From Lepidodermella squamata (taxonomy: Eukaryota > Animalia > Gastrotricha): a stretch of DNA of 64,000 nucleotides. Positions within the stretch are counted from its first letter, which is position 1. Every line of letters starts with the position of its first letter. The position numbers and the translations under genes are program-made. Shown in pieces: positions 1-60,243 of this stretch. The stretch is from the NCBI GenBank assembly GCA_047495785.1, contig JBLDXI010000019.1, positions 3,286,001 to 3,350,000 of the forward strand. Direction: 5' to 3'. The notes beneath the pieces were generated by a model. That model was given only the letters and a program-made list of their open reading frames with translations. It made no database searches and was not told the DNA's origin.

Positions 1-66
1 TATTAGCGAAAGTTGGTTATACACATGTACAAAAGAGTCTAGTTTTAACGGGGGATTGAAGATCTT

Positions 67-804: not shown

Positions 805-970
805 TTCTCATGACTTCAATTCTCTATTATATTTGCATTCATAAGCCTTTTGAGTGATAAAGTAACTGATGATCTCGCTTGAATGGCAGCAATTAGTCTA
901 TGTTATCTGAGATGTTGTCAATTATTGCTAAGACTCGAAACTATAATAGCTGAACTAATCGAAGCATGTA

Positions 971-3139: not shown

Positions 3140-3632
3140 TCTGTTAGCAGCTCCGATGCTGAGCTCGTCAGACGCACAATGCTCATCGTTTAGGACGAAG
3201 GACCCATGATGAGTCGGTGCACTATGAAAGCTGTAAACAGAACACTCCAAGACATCCGGAAGAACGACGTCCTTTTTAGTGGTAAGGTTACTTCCAACTC
3301 ATTTCTCCTTTAATAATACGTTGCTCACCGGGATTACGACGGTTATCGGCGGCAGTGCTTGCCTGTTTTACCAAAAGGCGATCGTCATAAAATCGTCGGG
3401 CAGTCTCTTTCCCGATCAGTTTTCTGGCATCGTGTGAAACAACTTACGCTGAGTCGAAACATGCGCGTCGTTACCGACACTGCCGTTGCCTCTTTCGCAC
3501 CGTGGTTGCTGACGGTTGGTGACAGTGTCGCTAAGAGACCTGATCAACAGCATCCTGATACCATTTCCCTCCCGGATCCGATTAAGTCTGTCGACAGGCT
3601 GTCGGACCTGATTATCTCCATTTATGGTGATG
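3140..3632 (+). mobile_element. Degenerate Helitron Pif1-like helicase fragment
   Basis: Translates to LIV*DEGPMMSRCTMKAVNRTLQDIRKNDVLFSGK ... RQCLPVLPKG...SLSRSVFWHRVKQLTLSRNMR...FAPWLLTVGD, matching Pif1/Helitron motifs (IWDEAPM, FGGK, GDFRQ.LPV, L..NMR, WLL.IGDG). In-frame stop present. Confidence 0.8.
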
Positions 3633-3782
3633 AGAAAAGTGGTACCGGAAAGCCTTTTGAAACGATTATTACTGATATATCCAATAAACAAGTACACCTC
3701 AATTCCTTTATTGGCAAACTTTGGTCATATAATAGTACAAAAGACTTTATTTTTATTTTTGATTTATGTATTAGAATTTTTT

Positions 3783-5014
3783 TTACGCAGGACTTTGAAT
3801 TGTCTGATGCCTGCTCAATCCAAATGCTTTCTTGAATTTCCCGCAAAGATTATCGTAGAATCCTGGCTTCACACATCGAACCGCTGGCTCGATACTCGCC
3901 TCAATCATGTAGACGAGTATTGAAGCCTGAACAACGTCGGCTGTTATCAATTTCGGGCCGAGATCTTCGAATAAAATCAGGAAGATGAAAACACAAAACA
4001 TTGGCATCCTAACTACCAAATAGATAGCTAATGACACGACAGTCTGCTTAGCAAAAAAGAGTTCGCGGGCTTGCCAGTTATCATGCATGTTACGAAGGGT
4101 GCTAGCTGCAGTTTCGACGCTAGCCGTATCAGCATTTGGGCTAACACTAAAGCGGCGTTTGAGGGATCGAAATTTTTTGAAAATCATCCTTCAAATAAAA
4201 ATAACTTTCTTTACTGCTTTTCGAAATCGGCAATTTCAACTGCTTACCAATTATTTTTTGCGATAACGTATCCCGGCACTGCCATCGTGGTAGAGTAGTA
4301 GGCGAGATTAAGAAAAGTAGTGTCGTAATTCCCCAGTCTATAACCAAAGCTAGAGCACAGCGCTATACTCGATCCATTGCTGACTCCAGGAATTGCGACA
4401 TTCTCCAGGCTGAAGACCTTCATCGGGTAGAAAAATATTGTTGACCAAAGCAGGCTGCTTAAAAAGAGTCCGCATACGGCGAGAAGGGCTACCTGCTTTG
4501 TTATTATGATTAGGAAATTTATCATATGAAATATGGAATTTCTTACGCGTTTTGAATTTGCTGAAGACGCGCGTCCATCTGACATGAGACACAGCCGCCT
4601 TTCATAGGTGATTAGCATGAACAGCCAGGGCGCATTGGAGCCGATGAGATACATGAGAAATTGCAAAACTAAGCAAGTTTCAGCGCTTCCATCTTGCCAA
4701 GAACCTGACTTCAGGTTAAGTCCGATTAATATTGTGTAAATAACTGCATTTATAGAACTTGCGCCTCCGAGGAGAGAAATCAAGATCAAGAAATCGCGAC
4801 GGACTCCTCTTTGGTAGTAGACAACGGAGTTCCATACGCTGGCGACAATTGCGAGTAAAGACGCTATTGCAAAGGCCAGGAAAAACGGCAGCCGGAACTC
4901 GATGGTCGTGCGTCCAAGATCGGTATACCAGCCGATGAAATAAGGCCTTGGCTTATCATCGCCATTGCTGGTAAAGTTTGCCAGAATCCACGATTTACTC
5001 CAAGAGATATTCAT
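3783..5014 (-). CDS. Class A orphan 7TM GPCR, 372 aa, 3 exons (5014-4547, 4492-4248, 4188-3783)
   Basis: Seven hydrophobic segments, TM3 Cys and YERRLC (DRY-equivalent), ECL2 Cys, TM7 SIEP. GT-AG introns restore an open frame of 1119 nt. Confidence 0.9.
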
Positions 5015-5439
5015 CTCTTATGGCAGTACTTATTCTTTATTTTATTGAATGATGAAGTAGTTGTAAGATCTCGCTCAAATATTAAAAAGTAGTTCATGAC
5101 GTTATCTGAGATGTTGAAAATCAATGCAACGTGTCGGAACGCTACTAACTAACTAACTATGTTTACTAACTTTACTGAACTTCGAAGCATTGGTAAGCTT
5201 ATAATCATCACCGCTCACTACTCATCTTTTCCTCTTCCATGCATTTCCATACCCTTGGAAATCAATACTTATTCGGCTAAGACAAAGATGAGATAGCTAA
5301 TGAGCTCATGGAAAGAGAAGTTTCGAACTGCGACTTGCTAGCCAAATTTCTAGGATATGAAAGCAGGGAACTTGGGGAATTAAGAATTAGGGCACACTAA
5401 GTTGGTTTTTTTTTAGAGTTGAAAGTTCGGATGAATGTT

Positions 5440-6686
5440 TCAGTGCAGGACTGTTAAGCAGATGGATTCTGCCTTTTCCGTTTGAATATAGCCAATAATC
5501 TGCCGATTTTTTACCTTGATGAAGCCATCGAAAGTTTCCTGGCTCAAGCAGCGAAGGGCAGGACTAATGCTACACTCGAGCGTGTACACCAGTGCCAAAG
5601 ACTGATAAACATCTGCTGTTATCAGCTGTGGCCCGAGGTCATTGAAAAATATTCCCAGTACCAGCATGACGATAACAGGAAAACGGGCTGTGAAATACAA
5701 AGCCAGCGAAATCAAAGTTTGCTTTAGAAAGAACAGCTCGCGGACTTTCCAAGCCTCATGAATGGCTGCGGTGGTACCACCCGATGAGCTGGAAGAACCA
5801 ACATCGGAAATACGGGGACCAAGCCTACCCCAGCTAGTAGTTCTCCGCTTTAATGATCTGAAAATGAGCCTGAAATGGGGCGTTAAGACTGAGAGTAAGA
5901 AAAAAGCACGCTTTTACCAGTTATTGTAGAATATGAAGTAACCAGGGACTCCAACGACCACAGTGTAGTATGCAACAAGTAATAGACTTGTATCATAATC
6001 TCCCAGACGGATTCCAAAGACGCTGCACAATCCTATGGCTGAGTCGTTGTTCAACCCTGATACAACGATATATCGCAATGAATAAGCCTGGAATGGGTAA
6101 AAGTACAGCGTTGACCAAATTAGAACATACATGACCACACAGCAATGGTAGCAAGCACAATCTGCATTAAATAAAACATTTTAACACTTTTAAAAGGAAA
6201 GGAGTTTACTCTTTTCGAATTCACTGATCGAGCATGTCCATCAGATGACAGGCAGAGTCTTCTTTCGTAGCTTATAAGCATATACAGCCATGGGGTCATC
6301 GAACCAGTGAAAACGATGCTAAACTGAAGAAAAGAACAAGCGACGTAGCCGGCCTCCCAAAATCCAGTATTAAGGTCGAGACCAAACAAAATCGCATAGA
6401 CTACGGCTAGCAGCGAATTCGATGCTCCCAAAGCCGAAATTAAGACAAGGAAGTCCCGGCGAACTCCTCGCTTGTAATAAACCACCGAGTTCCCTATGCT
6501 TGCGGCAGATGCTAGAATAGTTGCGCTGATGAACAGAATTAACATCGGCATTCGAGATTCCGCGCTCCTTCGGCCGAGGTTGTGATACCATCCAATGAAG
6601 TAAGGCCTCGGCCTCACGTCACCATTCTCTGTTATGTTCGCTAAGACCCACGAGCGCCCGATGCTGTGTAAACCTGAATAATTCAT
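5440..6686 (-). pseudogene. Class A orphan GPCR, probable pseudogene (1-nt deletion early in exon 2)
   Basis: Exons 6686-6210, 6161-5918, 5869-5440. Exon 2 is 244 nt versus 245 in the intact paralogs, giving IVLATIAVWSCMF*. Could also be a sequencing error. Confidence 0.75.
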
Positions 6687-7624
6687 CACGTTCGGACTTT
6701 TTATTTTGATTAAAACCTTCACTTTTCGCTCTAGTATCTTTGACACAAATTAGACACGTTTCCAATTAGGTTTCGAGATCGCAGTGCTGCACAGATGTGG
6801 CGCCTACAGGCATTTCCCAGACAGGCAATGTGTGTTGAAAAGATAAAATGTCCTTTGGTATCATTTACGTTAGGTGAAAAAATAAAGCTTTATATTTAAT
6901 TAATATACCGTATCTTCTCGAAGAGCATCGAAGCAGCGAAGACAAAACATAACTCATATTTCATTCATTCTTTCATATATCGCATAATATATATCGATCA
7001 ACGTGTGCGAATGTAAAAGCTTTTCGTAATGAACCTCTACAACTTATAGTTTGATGTAAACCCTTCTACATTTCCACACGAAGCGATTGAACTGTTAGGG
7101 ATGATCCCCACCGTCCCTAGCGATATTTCGCTCTCCAAGCTCAACGATCTCAGCTCAGAGAAAGACACAAGCCTGACTTTACTAAAACCAAACTAAACCC
7201 TGCTGGAATTACCGATGACTTTATTACTAGGTATTATTATTTTTTTGATCAATTCAAGACAATCATATAGCATTTCTACATAGCTTCCATCATCTTTTGT
7301 TATAAACGTTGAGCTTTAATCTTAGCATCATACAGAATGGTTCATTGCCAAAACTACAAGAAGGAGGGGTTATAAGCTCGACCTTATAAGCTTAGAACAG
7401 AATTAGTGATTCGCAGAAATGTTTTTCTGTGTTGTCGCAAATTTTTCCGCTTCTGTGCAGCTGCATCTCTTTTATCTAGCCATCATTCAAGATTCAGGAT
7501 GCGATTGGATGACGCTATATTATGATGGATCTTTATTCCTGAGATCCTATATTTACCCCCTGATATTCAATGAAGTTCAAAAAAATCGGTCATCAGTAAT
7601 AAGAGGCTACCAGGCTTTTCAAAT

Positions 7625-8871
7625 TCAAACTGCCACAGTCTGACTGATCCGTTTACATACGAAAAACCATCTGCCAATTTTTAACTTGAATAAATCTCTG
7701 AAAAACCCAGGCCTCAGGCTACGAAGGGCTGGGCTGATGCTGCACTCCAACGTGTAAACCAGCACTAAAGACTGGTAAACGTCGGCTCTGATAAACTTCG
7801 GCCCAATGTCGTCGAAAAACATCGCCAATACTAGAACAATGACAACAGGAAAACGGGCTGTGAAGTACAGTGCTAGAGAAATCAGAGTTTGTTTCACAAA
7901 GAACAGCTCCCGTGTCTGCCATCTAGTTCGAATTTGACCAGCTGAAGATTTGGAAGGGTCCGCAGGAGATACTCTGCTTCTCAGCCTACGCGATCGGCGT
8001 GAGCTTCGCATCATATATCGAAACTTTCTTAATATGAGCCTGCAACATAACAGAGGTTAAGGCGGCTTAATTTCAGTTAAATAATAACTCCACACCAGTT
8101 ATTGTAGATTGCGAGACAACCGGGAACACAAACGACGATGGCGTAGTAAACAAGGAGTAAACTATTTGTATCATAGTTTCCGAGACGATGGCCAAATACA
8201 CTACACAATGGAACAGCCGTGCCGTTGTTCAACCCGGGAACAAAGACTTCTCTCATGGAAAACGTTTGAAACGGATAGAAGAACAAAGTTGACCACATTA
8301 ATACATAAAGAAGCATCCCCACAATGGCAGCAATTACAATCTGTGATTCGGAACGAATTTAGACCTTATTCAGGACGGGAAAAAAGGATCTTACTCTTTT
8401 GGAATGTTTTGCAGAACCATACTCACCGGAGAACAAGCAAAGTCGCCTCTCGTAGCTTATCAGCATATAAAGCCACAAACCAAATGATCCAGTTGAAATC
8501 ATGCAAAACTGCAATGCCGTACACGCTGCATTTCCAGCATCCCAAAATCCAGTCTTAACAGTGAGCCCAATCAAAGCTGTGAAAAGGGCGGCTAGCAATG
8601 AGTTTGCAGCGCCTAAAATCGAAATCAGCACGAGCAAGTCCCGGCGAACACCTCGCTTGTAATAAACCACTGAGTTCCATAGGCTTGCGGCAGTTACCAG
8701 AATTGTTGCGATGACGAACAGAACAAACATTGGCATTCGAGATTCAAGACTCGTCAGTCCGAGATTGTGGTACCATCCAACGAAGTATGGTCTGGGCTTC
8801 TCATCGCCGTTTTCTGTCAGGTTTGCAAGAACCCATGATCGTCCAATGCTATCTAGAAAAGAAAGATTCAT
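7625..8871 (-). CDS. Class A orphan 7TM GPCR, 378 aa, 3 exons (8871-8395, 8340-8096, 8039-7625)
   Basis: Same motifs (PRPYFVGWY, GVRRD, YERRLCL, LGNYD, WQTRELFF, SISP) and intron positions as the paralogs. Open frame of 1137 nt. Confidence 0.9.
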
Positions 8872-9709
8872 CGCATGCCTTTTGATCGCATGACTGGGAT
8901 GATTTCAGCACCTTATTGTAATAACACTCGAAGTCCAGCCCTCTGCGAGGGAATAAGTCACTTTTTCAATCAGCAACTCGTCAGCTGACTATTCATTAGT
9001 ATTGCTCTTAATACATATTTTATACTTATTTTTTGGATTTACACAATTTTCCCTAAAATGTATTGCCCGCGATCAATTAAGTTCCGCGTAACGATAATTT
9101 TCTTTCAGTACGATATTGCATTTTAGATGGTATCGTCATTAATGAGAAGCGACAGCGAACAACGTTGCTTCAGTTTGTTATAAGGTACAGAGAGAATTCG
9201 GCTAAAATGCCGGGGCAAGAATCATTGCATGTTTTCGAAAATGCCACTGCCAGTAATAAACCCTTGTCTCTAATAATTATACTTAAAAACAATAGGGCTT
9301 AGAGAAATGGGTTATTTATATTTTTATTCATAATTGATCACAGATCACAGTAAAAAATGGTTTTCGCATCAAAGTACCTATGGAAAGCTCCTAATGCATA
9401 CCTGGGCTTTTTAATTGTTGACAAGTAGATCAACTTTGACGAAAAGCTTTGCACTCGCTTAATAAGATCTGTCATCTTCGAGGCAGCATTCCATCTCAAT
9501 TTCGCAATTTCGTCCAGTTTACACGCGCACCTTTACCTAATGATTCAGAACAGTATATCCTCATTGCTACGATTTGTTGACGAACAGTTTCCGATAATGC
9601 TCAACACATTCTCTAGACAAAGGAAATCAGAGGTGCACCAAATTCACTGAACTCGAATTATTTATTCATATCAGTTTCACGTAATAGCAGCCTTGTTACG
9701 CAATACTTT

Positions 9710-10949
9710 TCACGCTTGAGTGACAGCATTCCGTTTAAAAGGCAATTTCATCCTATCTATAAATTTGCCAAAAAAACCGGGCTTCAAACTTCGAACCGCT
9801 GGTTCAATACTCGCCTCGATCATGTATATCAGCACAGCAGCTTGATATACATCAGCAGTTACCAATTTCGGGCCAAGATCTTCGAAAAACACGAGGAGAA
9901 CGAAAACAACCAACAGCGGCATGCGAACTGTCGAATAAATCAGCAAAGACAGGAGCGTTTGCTTAGCGAAAAACAATTCGCGGGTTTGCCAGCTTTCCTG
10001 CATCACATTCCGCATTGTGCTCGTTGTTTGAGCAGTATCCACGCTTGTCGCATCTAACTTTGAAGCATTTGCGAACCGTAGTTTAATGGATCGAAATTTC
10101 ATAAAAATAACCCTGTCAACGTTGGGCGTTGGGTTAATTTGACTGACTCGTTTAAAAAAAAATCTTACCAATTATTCCTAGCAATAGCGTATCCTGGCAA
10201 GCCGATGGCTACTGTGTAGTAAATCAAGTTCAGCAATGTCGTATCGTAGTTTCCCAACCTATAGCCGAAGGTAGAGCACAGCGGTACACTCGATCTGTTG
10301 TTTGATCCTGGAATAACGACTAGCTGCAGGCTAAAGGCTTGTATCGGATAGAAGAATATAGTTGTCCATAGCAGCGAGCAAAATAGCAGACCTACGATTG
10401 CAAGTATAGCGACCTGAGTGTAAAATTTAGATTTTGAAAAATATGCCTCAGCTTTACCTCAAGAAGAAGTTATGTTCTCACCCTTTTCGAATTAGCAGTA
10501 GAAGCAAGTCCATCAGACATGAGACACATGCGCCTTTCGTAACTGATCAGCATGAAAAGCCACGGTGTGTATGAGCCACAGAGATACATGAAAAATTGCA
10601 ACAAGAGACAAGTTTGCTGATCAGCTTTCCAATAGCCCAATTCAACGTTGAGGCCCATTATAATTGCGTAAATAACTGCTACTATAGAACTTGCGCCACC
10701 AAGCAGTGAAATCAGGATCAAGAAGTCGCGACGGACTGCCCTTTTGTAGTAGAGGACGGAGTTACAAATGCTAGCGACGACAGCAAGCAGGGAAGCAATG
10801 ACGTAGACGATGAAAATCTCGAGCCGCGACTCGACCGTGTCACGGCCGAAGTCATTATACCAGCCGATGAAATAGTTTCTGGTCCTATCGTCGCCATTGC
10901 TCGAAAAGTTCGCAAGAATCCATGACGTGCCTAATGAATGGTTCGGCAT
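9710..10949 (-). CDS. Class A orphan 7TM GPCR, 371 aa, 3 exons (10949-10482, 10413-10169, 10112-9710)
   Basis: Paralog motifs, GT-AG introns, open frame of 1116 nt. Confidence 0.9.
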
Positions 10950-11637
10950 GCTTGTATCTCTCTCAATTTTCAGAAATGCATGCCTTTCTGACGGAATCTT
11001 CTATAGGGCGAGAAAGTTAGTTTGTCCATGCTGTTCTCGATGTAATTTGAGCTGAAGTGGGATTGATCAATGCATTCGACTTGATAACTTTGTAATATAA
11101 GCGGGAAAATTTATACTCTTCTATTGCATCAAGCCGATGTCGAAAGATGTGTCATGGCAAAGTTTCTACGTCAGAACAGGCTCCGCGTTTTAGGTGAAGA
11201 AACTAATTTGCTACGAAAATTAATCACGGTACTAAGAAGATGCATGGAATTCTTGAGATATGAAACCCCTACTTTCAAATCATTTGTCACAAAATCGTCA
11301 TCGTCTCACAGCACTCCTCGCATGATCGGTCAAAGGCAATCACGAGCTGTTAACTGTTAACGTGAAACCTCCCTCACAAACTGGCAATAGTCTTACATAC
11401 ACTATAAACTGAGAAAATAATGACAAGAGCTCCAGTTAGATGAATGGGACAGAATCTTCCTTTTGCCCTCACTGCACAGTACACCACTATAGAAAATTCG
11501 AACAGAAAATAATCTGCTACGCTATCTGCGATCCGCGCGTTATTCCAGGGCTTAAGGTCTGCCAAACCCGATAACCAACATTCACCAATCTAGATTGCCC
11601 TTGAAATGGGTCGACTTTACATATTAAGCTACTGAAT

Positions 11638-12958
11638 TTACACAACAAAGCGTCTCTTGAAGATTACGCCGACGATTCGACTCATTTTCCAGTTATCGAA
11701 ATATCCTGGTCTCATACTTCGTATCAGCGGGCTGATGCTGGCTTCGATCAAATAGATTAGCACTGATATTTTATGAATTTCAGCTGTTACCAGCTCGGGC
11801 CCGATTCCGTCGAAGAAGATCTCGAAAATGAACACGAACATCAGTGGAACGCGAGCTGTTACATAGACAGCAAGCGACAACAGCGACTGCCTTGCGAAAA
11901 ATAGCTCGCGATTCTGCCAGTTCACTCGGATTCGTCGCATTGAGCCAGATTTAGAGTTCGCGGTATCAAGCGAGCTATTCGTGAAGAAAGTCGCGCTTAT
12001 GAACCTAAATCTTTTGAAGATCACCCTGTAAACAGACATGGACAATTTTCGAAGTTCTGATTTGCAAGAAAACTGACCAATTATTCCTTGCGATCATAGC
12101 ACATGGGATGCTCATGGCCAAGGAGTAGTAAACGAGCATGAGTATGTTAGTATCGTAGTTGCCTAGAGGAAAGCCAAAGCCTCCGCAGAGCATGACAGCT
12201 GAAGCGTTGTTCAACGCTGGAACAAGGATTCGATGAGCGCTGAACATCGTGAATGGATAAAAAGCAAGGGTGGACCACATTGCAGCGCAGATCAGCGGGC
12301 CGATCAGGGCCATCAGTACCAACTGCAAGATCAAAAATCAAACGCTGGTTACCAAGTTATTCACACTTTTTATCGCGATTGTTTTTATCTGATAGCTTCA
12401 TGCTTCTTGAGAAACGAATTGCACTCTAAATCTTCCGGTTTTGATGATCTTCCGATCTAGGTTATTTGCTAGATTTCAAATTACCCGTTTCTTGCTGTAA
12501 GCTGAGTTTATCCCATCAGACATCAAACAAAGCCGTCGCTCAAAGCTGATCAACATGTAGAACCATGGCGTCGAGGATCCGCTTACAATCATAACCCATT
12601 GAATTATTCCACAGCTCAAGGTATCACCAGGCCATAATCCTGTCCTCAGGTGTTGGCCAACCATCGTCGTGTAGAGTATCGCTGAGACTGAATTTGAGCC
12701 TCCTAGAAACCTATCTAGAACAAGAAAATCCCGGCGAATCCCTCGTTTGTAGCTAACAATGGCGTTCCAGATATCAGCGACGAGAGAAAGGACGGACGCG
12801 ATTACAAATGCGAGAAATAGTGGCAGTCTGCTTTCAACGCTTGACTTGCTTAGGTCATTGTACCATCCGAGGAAGTAAGGCCTTGGCTGTTGGTCACCGT
12901 GTTCGGGTAACTGGGCCATAACCCAGGATGAACCAATTGATTCGGTCAAGTTAATCAT
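11638..12958 (-). CDS. Class A orphan 7TM GPCR, 368 aa, 3 exons (12958-12485, 12322-12078, 12025-11638)
   Basis: Paralog motifs (FERRLCL), GT-AG introns, open frame of 1107 nt. Confidence 0.9.
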
Positions 12959-13467
12959 TCAAACCAGAAGCGTCTACAGTATGCAAAACACAATGATTGA
13001 TTCGAATTGAAATGTTAAATAACATTCCATACCACTGTATTCCACGATAAGAACGCCTTTAGTACTAGCGAAAATCCTAGCATTCCTAGTTGGTCAGGCT
13101 GCCGAGTATCCACATTTTCATAACTTATAGTTTCAAAGAGGATAATTTGACCTCTATTACCACAGATGATCTTAATAGCGAAATTCGAAGGAATATTTAT
13201 TATTGAATCGGAGGAACTTGAACATGCTAAGATGTCTGTGGCGATCGCATTGTCTTTTTGGCCTAGTGCCTGCTAATTGATTTTAGTGCTGCTTGGTTTT
13301 AACGAACACTCGTGACTTGCAAAACACATACTTGCGGTGGCGTAAGCGTGTTTTAATTAGTAGGATCGAAGCATAACTTTAGGTCGCGCACACGAAGCTC
13401 GAATTTTAGAAATAATTCGATTATAAGGGTCTTATAGAACGGTATAGAACGAACTGGAATCGAAGTA

Positions 13468-13570
13468 AGTGGTTCCGGCGTTGGAACGGGTTCCTAACAC
13501 AAAACTACGAATCGCGAACCAACCTTGCTGAGGGCTTCTGTTTAGAACCGGTTCCAGCGCCGGAACCACT
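13468..13570. mobile_element. Tiny (~103 bp) TA-flanked MITE
   Basis: AGTGGTTCCGGCGTTGGAACGGGTTC ... GAACCGGTTCCAGCGCCGGAACCACT imperfect inverted termini, TA on both sides. Only the right half survives in copy B (~49037-49064). Confidence 0.7.
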
Positions 13571-13649
13571 TAGTCAGTTGACTCGCTTCTGCCGACTTCG
13601 GAACTATGATCGCCCAGCACCATCCCAGCATTCAGCCATTCAACACCTA

Positions 13650-16582
13650 CAGGGTGTTTCAGAACTTGCGCATCAGAATAACCTGCGGCAAATGGTTGCC
13701 TTGGTATCCAGAGTAAACGTGCGCGCGCTGTGCATACATTCCGCGCACATATGTTTATATTCTTGCACAGCATATTATAAAGCGCGGCTAGCGCAAACGG
13801 TTATGCGTGTAATGCGCACATGCTATGTAGTTGGCGTTATACGCCGAAACGGCGTACAAGCGGTATGCGCGCATTATAAAATGCGCAAATCGAACGCGTA
13901 TATACCGTAACGCTGCTGCAGTAATGGGGATACCGCTAAGAAATAAGACTTGCTCTTGCAAAATATCTGGAAATTTGCCGATTTCCCAATGAAGAATTCT
14001 CCAATAGGACAGATCCTTAATGCGGCTATGAATACATTTCGAGTTTTAAGTACAAATATAATAAAATTTATTCCAGATGATGTGATTTTTACGTCGTTGC
14101 TGTTGTTTCATTCCATGAATTTGATTTCACGTTCATTCACTCTTGAAAAAGCAGTAAAAATTGAGAAGAACTGAAAAAGGTAAAATGTTGCAACACTCTG
14201 ATTGAGTTTAAAACTTTCTGCGAGCTAACATTTGTGAGCAAAAACTTGGTCGCTTCCACAGGAAAACGTCGTTTACCTTTTGCATAAGAATAAACGAAAA
14301 AACATTGACGTTACCTTAAACAGCCTCTCTACGACGAATTTTGCGACACTTGATATGCGATTCCATGCAAAACCCGTGGGTAGACGTTTTGCGCGACCCG
14401 CCAGCCAGGTAGAACAGCTCTTGGGCTTTCTAGCGATATCAAGAAATCAAAAATTCATCCACGGGTTCTCGAACGGGAGGGAGGTAAGGATGACCCGTTT
14501 GCGGCTCAAAACGGCCCAACTACGACGATTTTTGTGACATTTGACCCGCGTCTCCTTGCGAATCCTGTGGATAGACTTTTTGCGCGACCCGTCAGCCTTG
14601 TAGACCTGCTCTTCAGCTATCTAACGATGTCAAGAAATCAAAAATTCATCCACGGGTTCTCGAACGGGAGGGAGGTAAGGATGACCCGTTTGCGGCTCAA
14701 AACGGCCCAACTACGACGATTTTTGTGACATTTGACCCGCGTCTCCTTGCGAATCCTGTGGATAGACGTTTTGCGCGACCCGCCAGCCTTGTAGACCTGC
14801 TCTTCAGCTATCTAACGATGTCAAGAAATCAAAAATTCATCCACGGGTTCTCGAACGGGAGGGAGGTAAGGATGACCCGTTTGCGGCTCAAAACGGCCCA
14901 ACTACGACGATTTTTGTGACATTTGACCCGCGTCTCCTTGCGAATCCTGTGGATAGACGTTTTGCGCGACCCGCCAGCCTTGTAGACCTGCTCTTCAGCT
15001 ATCTAACGATGTCAAGAAATCAAAAATTCATCCACGGGTTCTCGAACGGGAGGGAGGTAAGGATGACCCGTTTGCGGCTCAAAACGGCCCAACTACGACG
15101 ATTTTTGTGACATTTGACCCGCGTCTCCTTGCGAAGCCTGTGGATAGACTTTTTGCGCGACCCGTCAGCCTTGTAGACCTGCTCTTCAGCTATCTAACGA
15201 TGTCAAGAAATCAAAAATTCATCCACGGGTTCTCGAACGGGAGGGAGGTAAGGATGACCCGTTTGCGGCTCAAAACGGCCCAACTACGACGATTTTTGTG
15301 ACATTTGACCCGCGTCTCCTTGCGAATCCTGTGGATAGACGTTTTGCGCGACCCGCCAGCCTTGTAGACCTGCTCTTCAGCTATCTAACGATGTCAAGAA
15401 ATCAAAAATTCATCCACGGGTTCTCGAACGGGAGGGAGGTAAGGATGACCCGTTTGCGGCTCAAAACGGCCCAACTACGACGATTTTTGTGACATTTGAC
15501 CCGCGTCTCCTTGCGAACCATGTGGATAGACTTTTGGCGCGACCAACCAGCCTTGTAGACCGGGTACTTAGCTATCTAGCGATACCAAGAAATCGAAAAT
15601 TCATCCACGGGTTCTCGAACTGGAGGGTCGCAAAGATGACCCGTTTGCGGCCGAAAACGGCCCAACTACGACGATTTTCGTGACATTTGACATGCGATTC
15701 CTTGCGAACCCTGTGGATAGAATTTCAGCGCGACCAAACAGCCATGTAGAGGACATCTTTGGCTTTCTTGTGATATGAAAAAATGCAATTGTCACCCTCG
15801 GTCTTTCGGAGATGCAGTAGCTTAAAGTCTGGAAAACATCAATTTTTCACTTTCTCTTGGGTTTTCGGGAGATCATGAAAATTCTAGCCATGAGTATTTT
15901 GGTCTTTACCGTACATCATTTTCTCCTAATGTTCTTGGTTGTTATTTTGTGACAATTTTGATTAGTTATCCACGAAATGGAATCGCTGCGTTTATTCGAC
16001 GTAATGAACTGGAAATCTTGATTTTCGTTCTTTACTCGATGTAGAACTCAAGCCAGTGGTTCAAACTACGTCATTTTTTCTAAACTTGTGCAGTCGGAGT
16101 CTTGTATTCACGCAACGTGAAAATAATAATGATGCAAAGGCAGGAAACTAATCAATCATCAATTTTTCGACGAATTTAAAATCAAGTAAAATCAGAATTT
16201 TCTCAGAAATCATCAGTTTCTGAAATATCTAGCCACGGAAATTGAGAAATTGTTTCGAAACCTCTTGCTTCAGAGTCCAATCAATCAGCATGTTTCAGAA
16301 AACCATGACATCATCCTCGAAATAAAAAAGATATTTAATGAAACTCAGTTCAAATTTATCGAGGCTCGAACGTTCCCGCCAGAAAATAGCTCGGCAGTGC
16401 TATTATGTATGCTGTACATTTGTGTTTTACGCATATTTTATATGCTTATTACAGTAGTGCGTAGTACTTTTATAGGTAAAGTAGTATACGCGTATAACTC
16501 TATAGGCGCATAACAATGCATAACAATGCGCGCGCATTTGCCGCATGCGATTCGTATAGTGCGCGAGTTCTGAAACACCCTG
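13650..16582. mobile_element. Non-autonomous Tc1/mariner-type TIR element with internal satellite
   Basis: 23-bp TIR CAGGGTGTTTCAGAACT(T/C)GCGCA. TA duplicated at 13648-49 and 16583-84. Empty site (single TA at 49142-43) visible in duplication copy B. No transposase ORF seen. Confidence 0.92.
14330..15790 (+). repeat. 191-bp tandem repeat, ~7.5 copies
   Basis: Unit recurs at 14534, 14725, 14916, 15107, 15298, 15489, 15680. Central copies are near-identical and edge copies diverged. Confidence 0.95.
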
Positions 16583-16893
16583 TACAAAATCCTTAAAAAT
16601 GCACAAATGTTTTTTTTATTTTGAGAAAAGCCTTACAAAACAATTTAGGTAAAGCCAAAATTTTTCAATCATGTAAGACTAGTCATGGGAAAATTGAAGT
16701 CGTGTGATCATTTGAGCGTTCTAATTGTTTTTCTCCGATCAAATCGCATGTAATTTTTTTCAAATGATCACACGATGATCTACAAAAGGTATTTTCGATG
16801 TTGTCTTTCTAATACAAGTATCAAACCGATCTGTGGTTGCGATTTCCTAAACGGTAAAAGCATTGAGAACCAAGCTCCCAAAATTATCAAGAT

Positions 16894-16985
16894 TCATCGG
16901 CTTCCTGAAGCGTGCTGTTGCAGGCTCGGAATGACGACTGACAGGGAGGCCAAAAGTGAAACAACCAAACAGGAGTAACCGAGCG
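16894..16985 (-). pseudogene. 3'-terminal remnant of a GABA-B-like class C GPCR, truncated at the YR element
   Basis: Near-identical to 49447-49538. Homology stops at 16985, 5 bp from the left TIR of the YR element. Confidence 0.85.
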
Positions 16986-17010
16986 AAATATTCTATATAT
17001 TCCAGCACTG

Positions 17011-17170
17011 GTGCTGGGTAGTGCTGGGTAGTGCTGGATAGTGCTGGGTAGTGCTGGACAGAGTGTGCTGGACAAATAAAGCTCCATCCAGCACCGATCT
17101 GACATTTATATTCAGCACCATGTGGAGAAAATATCTTTTCATCCAGCACGCGTCCAGCTCCCCTCCAGCA
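17011..17170 (+). repeat. Left subterminal GTGCTGG array (10-bp period), followed by inverted CCAGC(AC) copies
   Basis: GTGCTGG at 17011, 17021, 17031, 17041, 17051 and ~17066. Inverted copies at ~17088-17170. Confidence 0.9.
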
Positions 17171-17591
17171 AATTTGTGGTTTAGCAGCGATGATTAGAGA
17201 TGGAGCTTCTTTGTGTGCTCGCGCGCTCGCCAATGTCATTTCGCTGCCGCAATATTGGACTCACAAGAAATTAAAAAAATTCGAGATTTTAATCTTTTTT
17301 ATAATTTATTCTGAAAATTCAAATTTATATAATTCGCGCTAAATTTTCACCCCGATCTTTGCCGGGCTATCTTGCTCGCGGCCCTCTTGCACTATCTCGC
17401 ACCATGAAGTTGAAATGAAGTTCATGACTCCTGAATTCTGAGGTTTTCTGCCATGTTTACTGAAACTATTTGAGCTTTTATATTCCCCTGTCAGTTATTT
17501 GCATCTCAGCATGAAGATTAATAACTATGTTTAATGAAAGTATCCATTACTAGGTGTTTAGCATTCGAAGCATAGCTCATCGCGTATCAGA

Positions 17592-18674
17592 ATGTTTGCT
17601 ATCGTTAAAAATGATGTGAACAGTGAATCCTGATATTTCCAATTCCCGGATCAAGCTGACAAATTGACTTACAAATCCTTTCAGAGCGCGTTACAAGCCT
17701 TTCTTCATATTTCCGCCCCGATTGAAATTTTTCAAAAGATATTTGATCTCGAAGTAAAAATTGCATGCGACTCAGACGTAAAGACGATGTTCCTAATGCA
17801 GCAATCGTTGCCCAATCGGTCTTTTGTTCTTGAAGTCAAATGCATCTCGACGAGTTCTTTGAAAAGGAAACGCGAGGGTGATGGGATCGAAACTAAACCC
17901 GGGCCAACGAAGAAGCCCAAAAATGTTTTGCTGCATTTCTCGGATGAAGAAGGCGTTAGTCAATCTAGCGAGTCGGAAGTGTAAGCTGAAATTGTCAAAT
18001 TCCGAGTCTTGGCAATTTTTTATCTCTTTCGTAGGGAAGAGGCTCCATCGCCTATGGAAATACCACCAGGTCCTCTGGAAAGAATTCGCCTTAGAGCACG
18101 AAGATCCTCTGAGCTTAAAGAAAATACTTCGAGTGGTTTTGCTAAAAAATAGTAAGTCCTAACTTGAATGCTGTATTTGAGATCATATAAGAATGTATGG
18201 TTGCAGCCAGTCCTCCCTTACTTCAAAGTATCCTGTGCTCAACGACATAACAAACTTCAGCGCTCAAGAACAATATTTTCCCACTTATGCTGGCCTTTCC
18301 AGTGCCCCGTGTCGTGCTCCAGTTTCAAAAGATGGATATGAGCTGCTCAGTCAATCCTGCAGATTGGATCCCATCCAGTGAGTAGCGTTATTTTTCGTTT
18401 TGTTCAAAAGTTAAGTGTTTCGCCTAGGATGATTGTGGCTGCATCAAAGGCTTCCCGTAACCGAAAATGCCGCAAAGGTACTGAATACAGCCCTGAAGAG
18501 TTGAGTGCACTTCAAATGATCTCATGGTACCTGTTCAAAAACAAACTGGCTTTATCCGTCACCAATATCGAAGATGCGATAATAAAAATTGGCATTGACA
18601 AGGAAGACGTTTTTGGAGACCGGACGACTGTTAACCTCATGGACAAAATCACGAAATTGGGCTCCCAGCGCTAA
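17592..18674 (+). pseudogene. Element gene A: PB1-like N-terminus, bipartite NLS, C-terminal telobox-like Myb/SANT domain; 4 exons, one premature stop
   Basis: GT-AG introns 17981-18034, 18152-18206 and 18378-18427 join four ORF pieces in phase. Single TGA at 17631. C-terminus YSPEELSAL...VFGDRTTVNLMDKITKL resembles telobox Myb F..RT.VNLKDKWRN. AATAAA near 18816. Confidence 0.65.
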
Positions 18675-19998
18675 CTGAATGCATCGTGAAAACTAATCAG
18701 AGTAACTTATTGACGAACGGCTTCTTCAATCATAGGCTTTCTAATGCGACTTGTTATTTTTCTATTTCTGCATTTCTTCATTCTTTAAAATTTGTTGAAT
18801 CATTTTTTCAGTGAAAATAAAGACATTAAACTTGCAGCCATTTTTAATTGGAGTTTGTTGTTCAATAGATGGAGACGCGCGTATTTATCGACATACCTAC
18901 TAATCATATTCAAGCCGTTGATTCATCTTTATTACTATTAGATGAAATCTGCAAACGAAGTGGCATCGAGACAGCCCAAGTGATCGGCTCTCAAGTTCTT
19001 CTCATCGGCAGTCCTAGTAGCGTGAAGAATTGACGCCGAATTGACGCTGGGCATTAAGTTTTCTACTCTGGGACGATCTGACAATGTGGTGACCAAGGAG
19101 TTGATTGAATGCCCTTGTTCTGTCGACGATGATCTTCAAAATGAGATCGGCAAGCTTATCAGTGGTTCCAACATGACTTTCACTGTTTCTAAGCGCGGCA
19201 TCGAACTTTGCGGTCCGCGTATGGCTCTGAGGGATGTCAGGGAAAGCGTGAGTTTTCTTGTTGAGAATTGGGTTCGAGACTTGCAGCCGGTTATGCGTCT
19301 ACCACCGACTCCTGTGGAGAAGCCCGGGCCTGTGAAGCCGCGCAACAAACTAGGTCGATTTATTTCCAGCAGTGAGACTAGAGCTGAGAAAAAACGCTAT
19401 CATTACGTGTGCGACTTTTGCAATAAAGAGAGAAGCAGCCGTGATTTTCGCGCTCACGTCGTGAACCATTGTAAGGTTGCTCGAATCAAACTTCCAAATC
19501 TGGAAGACAGAATTGCTAATGTTCGCCTAAAAGCGGAAAGCCGCGACACTGTCGAATCGAAGGTTGTCGTCCCTATTCCATATTTTATATTTGATTTAAG
19601 ATTCTGATTATTGCAGGCTGATCTGGAACATCATTACGGCGCTAGAAAAAATTGCGATTGCTGCCGATTTGACCACGATTCATGAACTAATCGACAAGAA
19701 CCAAATGGAGCGTATCATGCAAACGATTGACGGATTTAAAGTTACCGAAAGCACTCGCTACCGATTTGTTCTCTCTATTGTCGAATTTCTGCGTTACTGC
19801 TCAACCGAAGAATTCAGCGAGAGCGAGTATCCGATGATCGCAAAAGCTATAGCACGTTGGGAACAAGCCCGTTCTAGTGTTCAGGAAGGCCTCGTAAAAG
19901 AGCGTGTCGTCAAGAAGAAAAAAGACCTTGATTCATATGAGCGCGGCGAGTTCCCCAGCGTTGCTGAAGTGGTCGCTTTCCCTGAATTTCTCCTCGAT

Positions 19999-20000
<2 letters not shown>

Positions 20001-20031
<31 letters not shown>

Positions 20032-23000
20032 TTTTTATTTTTCCTCTTCGGGACTGAGCGTCGTGTACCGTTTCCGGTTTTGAAGAGGGCGAAGGCAGGC
20101 GAAGAATGATCCTCACCCACCCCCACAGTCGAGGATTCTGCTTTTTGTATAGAATTCGTAATTTTCAATCGAGTTTACAACCATGCACCATCCATCTTTT
20201 TCGAAAGTGACCGATTCCGCTAGTTGGATATCGGGAATAATTTGTATCTCAAAATCCTTTTCGCCGGCATTTTTATTATTTTCTCGTTTCTTAGTGGTTT
20301 TATTTTTCTTATATTTAACCTTATTTTTATCATTGGTTTTCTTTTTCCGGCGAATTTCCTTAGTAAGTCCTATTTTTATTAGGCTTCTATGCATCCATCC
20401 GTTGATCCATCTGGTTCGAGGTCTCCCTCTGGGTGCAAACCACCCAAGCGGAGGCGTCCAAATATTATATATTTTGTGTATTAGTCCTTCTGCGTCATAG
20501 TCACTTGACCTAATTATGTGACCTAGATATCTTAGCCTTTGTTTTTCAACTATGCGGCTCACTTCAATGAGACCTCCGCATAACGCAAGTCGAATGTCTA
20601 TATTAGGAATATAGTGCATCAGGTGGACGCCTACTATTGATCGGAGCCAACGATATTCTATAGTATTTAATCTATTTTCTTGGGCTACCGATATGTTCCA
20701 CGATTCGCAGGCGTAAATGATAATGGTAATATAACACATGTCGGCACTTTAAGTTTTGTAGCTATGGAAACCTGATTTTTGTTGCACATGAATTTATTCA
20801 TGGCGCGGAAAACACTACCTGCCTTAGAAATTCTGTAGTTGAGTTCCTCATCGATTTTGCCGTCACTAGTAATAATACTACCTAAATATTTAAAGATGAA
20901 AAAGGTCTAATAAATAAAATTTATACCTGGATGCCCCCGTTCGGGTGGTTTGCACCCAGAGGAAGACCCCGGGCCAGGTGGATCAACAGAGTGCATAGGA
21001 GTTTGATTAAAGTAGGACTCACTAAGGAAATACGCCGGAAAAAGAAATCTAACACTACGAAAGGCAAAAAGAATAAGGGTACTAAGAAAAAAGGTGATAA
21101 GAAAAAACCCGGCGAAAATAAATTTGAAACCAAAATTATTCCTGATTTACAATTAGCTGAACTCGCATCCTTTGAAAAAGATGAATGGCGCATGATTGTT
21201 AACTCAATTGATAATTATGAATTTTTCGGAAAAAGCAGAATCTTCAACTGTGGGGGTGGGTAAGGATCAATTTTCAATCTTTGCCTGCCTCCGCCCTCTT
21301 CAAAACCGGAAACGGTATAATGACGTGCAGTCTAGGAGAGGCTAAATAAAACTATTATTATTATTATTATTATAAATATTTAAATTTGGTCACTTTTTCT
21401 AGCTTTTCCCCGTTCAATTCCAATTCGTAGTTTTGAGCCGCTGACTCGTCTCTAGAAATGATCATGTATTGAGTTTTCGCCGCGTTGATTTTCAGATCCA
21501 ATTCGGTGCAAGCTAAATTGAAAATGTGAAGTAGTCGTGAAATTTCGTCGTGGTTCATGCCTAAAAGTGTTCCGTCGTCAGCAAACGCTAGTAAATTTAG
21601 GAAATCAGTCTCGCTCATACCGGTCTCACTGTTTGCTGTCTCGCTAATAGGAAAGCCTAATTTTTCAGCAGATATTTTTTCGCAAATTTTGTTGAAGGTC
21701 GCTATGAATAGCAAAGGAGACAACGGGCAACCCTGTCTTAGTCCCCTGGTAACATAGAAGAAATCTGAGAGTTCAGAATCGACTCTAGCAGCAACTTTAT
21801 TTACTTTATTTAACTTTGAATAGCTTCAATTAAGCTGGGTTCTACACCCATATTTTGAAGGGCGGCCCATACTTTTTCCCTGTCCACCAGATCATAGGCT
21901 TTTTCGAGATCGATGAAGACTAGGTGGAGTTCCTTCTTAAAGAATATAATTTTCTCAATAATTTGTCGGAGAACGTAAATGCAGTCTCTGGTGCCCTTGA
22001 GGGGTTGAAAACCAAATTGCAGTTTAGAAATTTTTGACCCAATTAATGCTCTCAATTTTCGTTCGAGAATAATGGCATGGAGTTCTCCTACAACACTTAA
22101 GAGGCTGATGCCTCTGTAATTTTGGCATTTTGATTTCTCACCTTTATTTTTATAAATTGGGGTAATTATAGCCGTTGACCATTCTTCTGGGACCCTCTTA
22201 TCTACCCAAACTCGATTCAAAATTTCCCTGAGCCATTCAATACTGGCCTCGCTCAGAGCTTTGATCATTTCGGGTCTTACTTCATCTATACCCGGGGCAT
22301 TACCGTTTTTCATGTGGTCGATGGCATTTTTAATTTCGGTGAGAGTAATTTCAGTTAAATTTGGATTTTTATCTAATAGAATTTCATCTTCGGGGTTATT
22401 GGGTTCCTTTTCAAGTCCTTGTAAATACGTTTTCATTACTTCTAATATTTCGTCAATTCCGCTGGTAAGTGAGCCGTCTTCTTTTTCAAGAGGATTGGGT
22501 TCGCTTTTCTCTCTAGTCTCTCCCCTCAATTTTCAAATTTCCAGCCAGAATTTGTTGATATTATCATAATCAGTCGGATTTTCAAGTAATTTGTCCAATT
22601 CAGAAAATTCAGTTTGATCCTTAATAATGTTCAAATGTTCAAGGGCCTGATTTTTCTCATTTCTAGCTATTGTATAATTCTCTCGGTCTATGCGGCCCTT
22701 GGTGTAGTTTTTAAAATGTTCTTTACCTTTTTGGATGATTTTGTTGGCTAATGGTGTCCACCAGAGCGGTTTTTCGCTAATTTTGCCTACTTTTCGTTCA
22801 CCGCAGGAGGATATCTGGCAGCATCCAGTAGGTTAGATTTAGTGTTCACCCACTTCTCTTCTATTGAGACAGGGTTTTCGCTTTCGTTTGCGATGTTGCT
22901 AGCTAAAATTTCATTAAACTTGGAACTGTGTTCCTCATTCCTAAGCAAATGATGTTTAATTGTTTCTTAATTTCAACCTTTTTCTGTTGAAAATTTGGGC

Positions 23001-23350
23001 ACTTAATAACACCACGAACCAGCCTATGATCTGATTCGAGTATGGGTTCTTCCTGAACGTCGCAAACATCAAATTTATCTTTTTCGCTTTTATCGACCAA
23101 GATGTAGTCTAAGAAGGATCTACGAAGGGTTTTTGCCATGTATAGGTTGCCCCTTTGCCCCTGAAGGGTTGCCCCTTTGCCATGTATAGCCAGTGTCGGG
23201 GAAACATGTGTTTATGAAACATAGATTGTTGCTGTTTGCAAATTCAATCCATAAATCTCCTTTATCATTTCTAATGTTATCACCATAAGGGCCTACAGTT
23301 TTTGATTTTTGTGCACTCATAATCCGGCCGTACAAATCTCCCATTTGTTA
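20001..23350 (-). mobile_element. 5'-truncated, decayed RTE-like LINE (APE endonuclease + reverse transcriptase)
   Basis: APE motifs (MGDL, LDYILV, SDHRLV) and RT motifs (NYRGISLL, QFGF, FIDLEKAYD, RQGCPLSP, FADD, FKYLGS, RYLGH, PRGRP). (ATT)n tail at 20001-20030. 7-bp TSD TCGATTT at 19994-20000 and 23351-23357. Frameshifts present. Confidence 0.92.
20895..21372 (+). mobile_element. Nested 5'-truncated copy of a related LINE, inserted in opposite orientation
   Basis: Encodes the same C-terminus (PPFGWFAPRGRPRARW...IFNCGGG) with a (TAT)n tail. 12-bp TSD TAAATATTTAAA at 20883-20894 and 21373-21384 splits the host FKYLGS motif. Confidence 0.9.
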
Positions 23351-24707
23351 TCGATTTGTTCAATTCAAAGCTATCTGATTGCGAAATTCTACCAAGCCGT
23401 ACGTTGTATGAATTGTTTATCGCCATGACTGCTGCAGCACTTGTTAAGTCGACGATAATTCGCCCAAGCTCATTTTGGAAAATGACCCTCAAAGAATTTT
23501 CTGGTGCTGTACAAAGAGAGCTGAATGGGGGTGAAATTTTATATATTGTCCGTGTTTTCGGCAAGTTTCATAGATTTTGCATGCCAACTGTGAGCTTATT
23601 TTCGATTCTCAAGACTGCAAGGACACCAATTCGAATGCTGGATTTGTTATTTTCCCAGCCCTCATTCACGATAATACCAAGAAGTACATCAGACATTGGA
23701 GAAACAGGATTGCGAGTAAGAAAGTTCCTGAATTGTTTGTTGATCACCTCGGCCGACCTTGGTCAAGCGACAAACTCGACAAAATGGTCAGCGGACTTTG
23801 GAATAAATGGCGTTCCGATTCCGAGTTGCCTCAAAAGAAATTTGGGTTTACCCTCATTCGAAAAAGTGCGCACACCGAACACGCCACCGCTTCTGGATAC
23901 GGCGACAACAACTTCGCACAAGGAGCAGGTCATACGTAAGACTTAGTGAGAAAAGCGCTGGAATAGGGAATCGAAATTTATTTTTGCTCCTAGGCGCTCC
24001 ACAGCTATCAGGCACTATGAGCTTATGACTTATGACGGGGTCAGATGACGGGGTAAGATGACGTCCCTTCACCGGAAAGCCCAATCATCAAGGTCTGTGA
24101 AAATTTTGAATTTGGAATAATCATTGGATGATTCGTAACTATTAACTATTTAATTTATAGGTCTCCGATTGTCACTCCCAAAACAAAAGTGCTGCAAAAA
24201 TTTCGACTGAGTCATCCGTATTTTTGTCGCGTTTCTCGATTCAATTTGCCAACATTTTTCTTTAATTAGGTTGACACCGGTAATTCGATTGGTGAAATCA
24301 GACTTCGACCTGACCAAAAACCCGAGAAAAAAGGCTGCAGAAATCTCAAACAATGAGTATGCAATTGCGCACCATTTTTTTACCAACAATGACCGATTAT
24401 ACATGTTTTCACAGGCCCCGTGAAACTCTGAAACGCCGGCGTAAATAACTGGATATGAAAAATGGAACACATTTGAGCTAATTTATTTGAATGATGTTTG
24501 CTTGATGTTTAAATTTGAAATTTCATTGATTGCTTTAGGTTGGATTTGATTTTTTCACGCTCTGAACTGGATTTGAAAAATCATCTAGAACGATGATTTA
24601 TCGGGTTTCATTTCAACAGGTTAATTCAATTTCAATTCGATTTTCAATTCAGATGATGCAACAATTTGGATTCTGAAAATGCATTCAATCTTAATTCTTT
24701 CGCATGA

Positions 24708-25335
24708 ACCAGAAATCGGACACTTTTCGAGTCACCGGAGTCATTCGCTGAAATGTATACCGCACTCATGAGAGAGTTTCGCATTATAAAAGCCAATATT
24801 TTCTTCAAGTTTCGCAATTTGAAAATCAGCCTGAAGAGCGATTGTGACATGAAATCTATGATTCTCGTTCATTCGCGTTTCGAACATGAGTCATCCCCGT
24901 TGATATTATGGGCTGATGTTACATTACTTCCAGGTAGTAACTTACGAAACTTGCGAAAAGTAACTTTTGCTATCGATATCATTTTTCAGAAGCCAAAAAT
25001 CTGAACGAAGTAATCGACTCCGGTTCTAAGGACTCAGAAGCGTCCCAGCCTGTGTCGTTGAAGCGGCAAGCCGTCAGTGTCAGTGAACAAACCAGCAATA
25101 CGAAGCGCTTGAAATTTGGGTAAATTTTCTCCAATAATAAATGTCCCTTAATGCTTGATGTTTCTTCAGATCCACATCGGTTTGCGACTCGTCGAATGAA
25201 ACAAGGAAAAGCTGTCTGGATAAAAAGCTCATTCAAGAGTTGGAACTTTTCGAAAAATACCCTGATAAACCATCTGAAAATCAAAGCTGTAAAAAAAGTA
25301 AAAATGATACAACGTTAGCAATTTTCAAAGAATAA
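24708..25335 (+). CDS. Element gene C: spliced paralog of gene A (PB1-like domain + bipartite NLS); start unresolved, possibly decayed
   Basis: EMYTALMREFRIIKANIFFKFRNLKISLKSDCDMKSMIL aligns by eye with gene A SFQSALQAFLHISAPIEIFQKIFDLEVKIACDSDVKTMFL. Introns 24934-24989 and ~25120-25170 keep the frame through SLKR..KRLK to TAA at 25333-25335. Confidence 0.5.
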
Positions 25336-25479
25336 AATGTGTGTGAGACGAATTTATTTCTGAAATAAACATGAGAATGCTGGTGAATTTCAAGCTGACT
25401 TTTTGGCTAGTTTTATTCGCTTCCTGTGAAACGAGGCGGAATTCCATATGCATTTGAAACATAACTCTCAGGTTAATGG

Positions 25480-25630
25480 CGCTGGATCGTGCTGGAATCA
25501 ACGCTGGACGAGTGCTGGATGAGTGCCGGAGGAGTGCTGGAAAAAAATAAAGGCGAGAATTTTCAGGTGCTGGACAAGTGCCGGTGTAGTGCTGGATAAA
25601 AGTGCTGGATGAGTGCTGGAAAATATAGAA
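25480..25630 (+). repeat. Right subterminal GTGCTGG array (~11 copies) and right TIR
   Basis: Repeated (G/A)(T/C)GC(T/C)GG, mostly at ~11-bp spacing, ending in AGTGCTGGAAAATATAGAA. Confidence 0.9.
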
Positions 25631-26069
25631 ATCCCTAAACCTGGCCGGCTTTGAAGGTCTTAAAAGTGTACGCCGATTAAATATACCCCACCCCTTTCCT
25701 CAACGGTTTCAATACGGATTAATCTATTGTGTCTGTCGCTGAGCGTGGTCTAGTGAGCAAAAATCGAAACACTGGTATAAAGGCTGTCCTTCTCTTGGAG
25801 AGTTTGACCGGTGACAGCTCAATCAACGAATAAATTGCCGGCTGTAAAACCAAAAAAACCCAGCCAAAATTAAACCGGTGACTTTATTAGTGGTTATTAT
25901 TTGCTCAATCACAGACGCCTTAGAATTTCTAGGTAAAATCCCTTATTTGGCTACTCAAGTTGAAAGATTTTAGGTGTCAAGGATAAAGGATAGACATTGA
26001 CGATGGGAACATGATGTCAATAATCGCCATTTAGTCATTATTAAGTTCACACCTTCGGTCGCTCTCAAC

Positions 26070-53968: not shown

Positions 53969-54378
53969 TTTTCGCTGTCTCGCGCGCATGGTGCAAATTC
54001 AATATTTGAAATAGGTTCCAGCCTAATCCGGGCGGGCATTCTCATTCTCCATTCTCCTGAACACAACGGATTTAAATAAATATTGAGATGTTAGCAAGAT
54101 TAACAACAAAATGACGACTTTCTGCTGCAGACACCTGCAACGGTACGTTATCATAGGAAAATAAAAGAGAACTTGAAACTGAAATCATCAAGGACAATAA
54201 TCTAAATGAAGTCTGAAGCTTGCAATCTGTGTACGGCGCGATCGTAACGGATAGTCATCTGCTAATTGAAAACGTGACTATAACTAATTTGCTTGCAAGA
54301 GATTTTAACATCTTACACCGCAATCGCAAGAAGTACTGTAGCCGTCCCTTTCAGGAGATTAGAAGGTATCAGAATTCG

Positions 54379-60035: not shown

Positions 60036-60243
60036 GCCCTGTCAAAAACCTCCTCAGTCCTTTTGCTCTTGCACATCGCGAATGTCGAAAACAATCGTCT
60101 TGATTAGCATTATCATATAATATTCTACTGTTTTGCAGGTCAACGTTCACGCGTGCCCACGTGATCAAATCGTGTGGTCAAAACACGAAACTTTCAAGTT
60201 TTTGCTAGTGCGATGGTTTGGTTACTTCTCGTCATTTTGTCAT

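Follow-up and report, generated by a model that had tools for sequence, protein, structure and literature searches.

Tyrosine recombinases (YRs) excise DNA to a circle and integrate it by strand exchange across a short spacer. For Cryptons, such a circle model has been proposed without experimental demonstration, partly since the ends of the elements are hard to define (2026 review, PMC13565253). Cryptons are described without terminal inverted repeats (TIRs), and animal Cryptons without any terminal repeat or non-YR domain (PMC3212892, PMC13465315); some CryptonF and CryptonS elements carry a second gene (PMC3212892, PMC11162782). A core common to both ends is the pattern of Cryptons and Starships (PMC3212892, PMC13565253, PMC10104507). 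The two termini of CryptonS share a pentamer (PMC13565253), and some Starships combine direct and inverted repeats (PMC11162782). Here, we analyze an element at positions 16986 to 25630 of a 64-kb stretch of the Lepidodermella squamata genome (hereafter, the window). With a probability of about 0.8, we consider it a dead copy of an autonomous YR DNA transposon of small invertebrates that would move by a Crypton-like mechanism involving a circle and a target.

Between the ends of the element lie three genes on the plus strand with introns of 50-58 nt, the middle one being the YR gene. The latter is interrupted by a long interspersed nuclear element (LINE) that consists of two nested pieces rather than one (Table 1). 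Neither a reverse transcriptase (RT) of its own, nor a DDE transposase, nor a polymerase was found in the window element, and the only RT matches fall within the inserted LINE. The copy is dead and bears at least six lesions. These are a premature TGA at 17631 in helper gene 1, a frameshift near 24724 in helper gene 3 and, in the YR gene, a frameshift near 19030, the LINE at 20000-23376, a 13-bp duplication (24032-24063, 3' of the tyrosine codon) and the absence of 77-83 codons near 19630 compared with three homologs. In these respects (three co-oriented spliced genes, no replication or transposition enzyme other than the YR, inactivation), the preliminary description of this locus is borne out. 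The native length of about 5.3 kb that it gave corresponds to the 5,269 bp left after removal of the LINE; as some 80 codons of the YR gene are deleted, the intact element is estimated at nearer 5.5 kb.

Sequence comparison and structural modelling together identify the central gene as a tyrosine recombinase. Its catalytic codons are R 23461, K 23619, R 23859, H 23931 and Y 24016. The residues R, K, R and GH-x8-Y (not x7, as first read), together with a phase-2 intron after GH, are kept in 10 loci from about eight families. The exon at 23577-23936 matches Phage_integrase clusters of the Atlas (language-model features, 0.93) and retrieves seven relatives among 1.8 billion representatives. Every window exon, before and after the LINE, has a collinear counterpart in three near-complete relatives, P0002, P0016 and P0017, at 30-46% identity (37-45% for P0016). 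Residues 285-596 of P0016 were modelled with AlphaFold, the window exons being added as rows to the alignment, at a pLDDT of 75. The top structural matches of this model are XerA, Cre, the Tn1549 integrase, XerH and lambda Int (Foldseek E 1.6e-5), with Z 13.3-9.9 for the top 13 matches and Z 12-13 for XerA, Cre and the Tn1549 integrase, which supports the YR fold expected for this protein. The window exons themselves have no match in Pfam, PHROGs or PDB sequence searches, and among the YR relatives searched only P0007 gave a weak match to the Phage_integrase profile. No DUF3504 match at E<=1 was obtained for P0002, P0016 and others, nor a GCR1_C match on P0016, which extends about 60 amino acids beyond the tyrosine. 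The KH-like region in the N-terminal half was recognized by eye and has a single weak Pfam match, in L138. GC-AG introns occur in the YR genes of the window (23561-23613) and of L007 (at 3511); the window's one is missing from P0002 and P0016. The Atlas also holds unnamed chordate YR-fold clusters and a 197-member cluster combining YR-like and SET domains; no paper was found that ties SET domains to YR transposons.

Close to its outer boundaries, the element has 19-bp inverted repeats, as first described (Table 1). Five shuffles of the 43-kb non-redundant part of the window, to which all exact-motif and 19-mer counts refer, gave 0, 0, 5, 1 and 1 such pairs. On its own, the repeat pair is modest evidence; it becomes convincing once the subterminal arrays and the break in the flank are added. 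Homology of the left flank to its paralog at 49136-49538 stops at 16985; therefore, the left end of the element is 16986, five bases further out than the 16991 first proposed. The claim that no target-site duplication exists was too strong, as a 5-bp direct repeat (GAAAT) occurs at 16985-16989 and 25628-25632. Since the two flanks come from different loci, the window offers no empty site for judging a target duplication.

Within this direct repeat, AAAT stands in the same orientation at both ends of the window element. The left end reads AAATATT in the window and in L007, a complete related element, and AAATATA (6/7) in L005, in each case 17 nt outside the first array motif; the chance of a 7/7 match between window and L007 is about 1e-4. 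At the right ends of the window element, L007, L004 and L010, AAAT has the orientation seen on the left and lies 10-12 nt beyond the last motif. AAAT is thus present in all seven ends examined, and the direct repeat at both termini is GAAAT in the window and CCAAATAT in L007. The AAATCCC of the right junction is probably derived from the target, because it is identical to the adjoining 1492-bp array. When the ends are joined in silico, the window and L007 alike give arm-AAATATT-arm, and the bases that flank the 7-mer are complementary. This junction resembles a YR att site, and the TIRs would most simply be the inverted binding arms of the recombinase. A scan of metagenome contigs with 18-mers of the TIRs, from which L037 and L083 (sample names pointing to primate and human gut) were left out, returned chance matches only, none with YR homology.

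The GTGCTGG arrays reported at both ends are likewise confirmed, with 16 out of 21 exact GTGCTGG/CCAGCAC sites located within about 200 bp of the two ends (~390 bp in total). The motifs tend to be spaced by multiples of 10.5-11 bp (p about 0.002 under the stricter null), a phasing that fits predicted binding on one face of the helix.

Judged by sequence, the end motifs and helper-gene types are a family trait, because they recur in a distant relative. This relative, L007, is a metagenome contig of another organism whose YR is distant from that of the window. It holds a complete 4.7-kb element with three genes, imperfect 26-bp inverted ends and GTGCTG(G/A) arrays that, like those of the window, run in one orientation at the right end but are mixed at the left end. 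In L004, arrays at both ends surround a YR gene and a downstream helper. The two kinds of termini hence co-occur around the same gene types on single contigs. The helper is also carried by L011, L135 and L137. The array motif differs by YR subfamily (GTGCTG, GTGCC or GCGGAA), and gene order and helper number vary among relatives. No relatives were found in viral contigs and no close relative in 185,579 prokaryote genomes; a tree of the YRs within the family has no well-supported branch. In L001, a 4.3-kb DDE-type element with two or three extra reading frames (~285-4660) is inserted upstream of the YR gene. A membrane-protein gene in L001 was considered as cargo and rejected, as it belongs to this nested DDE element, which is missing from L004.

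Profiles of the helper domains were built solely from relatives and run against 734 window segments. With the N-terminal profile, window gene 1 ranks first (E 4e-5) and gene 3 second (E 0.003), and with the C-terminal profile the last exon of gene 1 ranks first (E 3e-12). A short gene of L007 scores above the cut-off for PF00564 (PB1; 24.6 bits), and the L135 and L008 helpers score below it. The window copies have no direct PF00564 match and are linked to PB1 only via the profile of the relatives; with this, PB1-like is a reasonable label for the helper N-termini. The Myb likeness that had also been suggested found no support, since the C-terminal helper domain has no Myb match in Pfam or PDB (alignment A4). 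In L005 and L004, short genes upstream of the YR gene end in a similar LEDFI-like motif and represent a third helper type, which was not found in the window element.

In the mechanism that we propose, the YR would bind the two short inverted arms and join the ends into a circle, the junction of which (arm-AAATATT-arm) would be a lox/att-like site with a 7-bp spacer. The circle would then recombine into a chromosomal target containing AAAT, so that each end retains AAAT, in line with the Crypton proposal. A less secure extension is that the GTGCTGG arrays, with their helical spacing, could be accessory arm sites for the helical domain of the helper or for the zinc finger of the YR, and that the PB1-like domains might bring these proteins together in a direction-setting complex, in analogy to the arm sites of the lambda and Tn916 integrases. 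A family with sharp ends predicts an exact circle junction and a target core, by which the circle model becomes testable. The conserved helpers would be the first accessory factors found for a eukaryotic YR transposon in the literature searched, and a YR with a target requirement of just 4-5 bp might attract interest as a tool for integration. The window copy, being dead, mainly adds the three-gene layout and the end rule.

Several observations weigh against an autonomous YR transposon with this mechanism. The AT-rich ends make short matches cheap, and the anchors were picked after the ends had been viewed; moreover, the left flank of the window element has no forward AAAT at the junction. Phased spacing could also result from tandem duplication of a 10-11-bp unit. 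The structure is that of a homolog, lacks the tyrosine exon and was built on a 14-row alignment. The sequence relatives all derive from a small number of related metagenome samples. The YR catalytic series, first described as full, deviates in the HxxR histidine, which is Thr or Asn in all members (Thr in the window); as the replacement is family-wide, it is no lesion of the window copy. The mismatched flanks, of which the right one is a near-perfect 15-copy array where assemblies fail, raise the question of whether two ends of different origin were joined by chance or misassembly. We consider this scarcely credible, as in L007 and L004, which stem from other samples, the same genes are enclosed by both ends within one contig.

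Alternatively, the mechanism may be as proposed and the family already catalogued, as a divergent member of a Crypton group present only in Repbase/Dfam (e.g., CryptonV) or of the chordate YR families of the Atlas. Indeed, the closest Atlas structures belong to unnamed clusters, most of them from chordates (TM 0.66-0.69), and to a cluster of SET-domain fusions (TM 0.60), with bacterial YRs ranking below. CryptonV is known as an animal, target-specific group (PMC8869645), and the short terminal direct core suits a catalogued Crypton as well. Against this stand the absence of chordate proteins among the sequence-search matches, the lack of a DUF3504 or GCR1_C match in the family YRs and the fact that literature searches turned up no YR element that has PB1 helpers or arm arrays, which makes a catalogued origin unlikely, though a real contender. 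Far less probable is a TIR element moved in trans by a DDE transposase, with the YR as cargo or resolvase in the manner of Tec1/Tec2 or MarCry. DDE elements typically have inverted ends with subterminal arrays, and Tec1/2 and MarCry-1_FO do pair a YR with a DDE transposase (PMC3212892). However, no DDE gene is present in the window element, L007 or L004, and the one in L001 belongs to the separate nested insertion; furthermore, the ends are asymmetric with a direct core, and their motif varies with the YR subfamily. Large-virus YRs among the structural neighbours (TM 0.5-0.6) would suit an origin from an integrated DNA virus or a Polinton-like element of which only the YR module is left. This origin is highly improbable given that no locus contains a capsid, polymerase or ATPase gene, that complete units of 4.6-5.3 kb have both ends (the two complete copies examined being free of viral genes), that viral contigs hold no relative and that a spliceosomal intron is conserved. 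An autonomous YR transposon therefore remains our preferred reading.

The left flank of the element is the 3' end of a copy of a class C receptor-like gene. On the right (25627-48323) follows a near-perfect tandem array of a 1492-bp unit in 15.2 copies (99.9-100% identical), without a long open reading frame and with AAATCCCT at both array ends. This array is a recent amplification or an assembly artefact. It was considered as part of the element and rejected, as L007 and L004 stop at the same motif without it. The first units of the array have no Rfam match. The stretch 12848-16985 is duplicated at 48324-49538 (96-99%, with differing insertions), and the element and the array lie at the join. 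It is located between class A-like and class C-like receptor genes, and its copies differ by 1-4%, as two alleles would. There are about even odds that a single, later YR crossover between the left end of the element and a new site on a homolog generated a 1.2-kb tandem duplication and the mismatched flanks; the left target in this model lacks a forward AAAT, which speaks against it, and a misassembly could account for the arrangement instead. For comparison, Chlamydomonas Cryptons target their terminal motif, and one copy recombines with an independent target (10.1101/2022.05.23.493040).

Some further features of the flanks were observed. A comparison of 16981-16992 with 49534-49545 places TATTT in the left target just past the junction, i.e., AAATA on the minus strand, which is opposite to the model and may be due to chance. 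The duplicate copy lacks a 2.9-kb element located at 13648-16584, whose inverted ends start with CAGGGTGTTTCAGAAC and which has an internal 191-bp tandem array (14329-15750). The regions 1-12960 and 49447-62250 form a receptor-like gene cluster with many class A-like paralogs and two intronless class C-like genes (756-760 aa, ANF_receptor domain, 88% identical). An insertion of about 150 bp with a 10-bp duplication (AACCAATTGA) and a GC-rich, hairpin-like end that recurs elsewhere in the window was also noted (48410-48566 and 53403-53457).

Table 1. Features of the element, with positions in the window
Feature	Position	Strand	Description
Left terminus AAATATT (7 bp)	16986..16992	+	Not flank-derived; predicted crossover spacer
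Left inverted repeat, 19 bp	16991..17009	+	Predicted core-binding arm of the recombinase
Left subterminal array	17002..17170	.	Six GTGCTGG, mostly 10-bp spacing, plus five reversed copies
Helper gene 1	17592..18674	+	4 exons, 307 codons; PB1-like N-terminus, conserved ~75-aa helical C-terminal domain
YR gene	18869..24040	+	Exons 18869-19562, 19617-19999, 23381-23560, 23614-23935, 23994-beyond 24040
YR regions			KH-like and C2HC zinc finger (both in N-terminal half), core-binding domain, catalytic domain
Inserted LINE	20000..23376	-	RT on minus strand, TTA tail; GATT 4-bp duplication 19996-19999 / 23377-23380; not native
Second LINE 3' end, 5'-truncated	20902..21385	+	Nested in first LINE, opposite orientation, 76% identical
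Helper gene 3	24679..25335	+	3 exons; short PB1-like N-terminus
Right subterminal array	25479..25619	+	Nine to ten GTGCTGG/GTGCCGG, one orientation, mostly multiples of 11 bp apart
Right inverted repeat, 19 bp	25612..25630	-	Matches left repeat 18/19
Right junction AAATCCC	25629..25635	+	AAAT common with left spacer; identical to adjoining 1492-bp array

Compared with known systems, the family comes closest to Cryptons, with which it shares a YR as sole transposase, the absence of an RT, a similar size, an apparent short direct repeat at both termini and a proposed circle model; rearrangements with one-sided junctions are known for Cryptons as well. Yet, the window family differs from Cryptons by its inverted arms of 19-23 bp, its phased arm arrays, the KH-like and zinc-finger regions of its YR and one or two PB1-like helper genes. 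Because of these inverted ends, the extra genes and domains and the missing DUF3504, we do not file it as a Crypton. With regard to the separate groups, CryptonA and CryptonI are set apart by the absence of a DUF3504 match and by the presence of extra domains, genes and terminal repeats; CryptonF, less clearly, by the absence of a GCR1_C match on the homolog P0016, the tail exons of the window YR being only partly modelled; and CryptonS, with its TATGG termini and stramenopile hosts, by the AAATATT / AAAT ends. Starships are similarly YR-mobilised; they have direct repeats and occasional TIRs, and their repeats are attributed to homology between termini and target (PMC10104507, PMC11162782). 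In contrast to Starships, the family has no DUF3435 match, its YR gene is second or third whereas the Starship captain comes first, and its elements measure 4.6-5.5 kb, not tens to hundreds of kb. In addition, its host is an animal, as indicated by the animal-type receptor flanks, and not a fungus, and it carries conserved helpers instead of variable cargo. Tec1/Tec2 of Euplotes and MarCry-1_FO also have a YR gene between inverted ends, but are moved by their DDE transposase, none of which is present in the window element. DIRS, Ngaro and VIPER elements share a YR integrase in eukaryotes; the window element has no RT, RNase H, gag or split repeats, and no RT occurs in L007 or L004 either.

Elements of the Tn916/Tn1549/lambda type have short inverted core arms, a 6-7-bp spacer, asymmetric internal arrays of arm sites and accessory proteins. 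The window family shares their YR fold (6emy, Z 12.2) and differs by its eukaryotic spliced genes, the absence of Xis and conjugation genes and an identity of 10-16%, so the likeness is one of analogy. In the literature searched, YR elements with either PB1 helpers or arm arrays were not encountered. The new class put forward in the preliminary description finds support insofar as the family matches none of DIRS/Ngaro/VIPER, Starships, Tec elements and the published CryptonA/F/I/S; its status as a class is unproven, since a direct core and second genes already occur in Cryptons. We regard the family as a lineage of YR DNA transposons that has apparently not been described before and that is Crypton-like and set apart from CryptonA/F/I/S by published descriptions, with Repbase-only groups such as CryptonV outside the comparison. 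More tentatively, and with somewhat more doubt than confidence, it might constitute a separate animal YR superfamily at the level of Cryptons or Starships, characterized by a phage-like combination of an att site with a 7-bp spacer, phased asymmetric arm arrays and PB1-type helpers that control direction.

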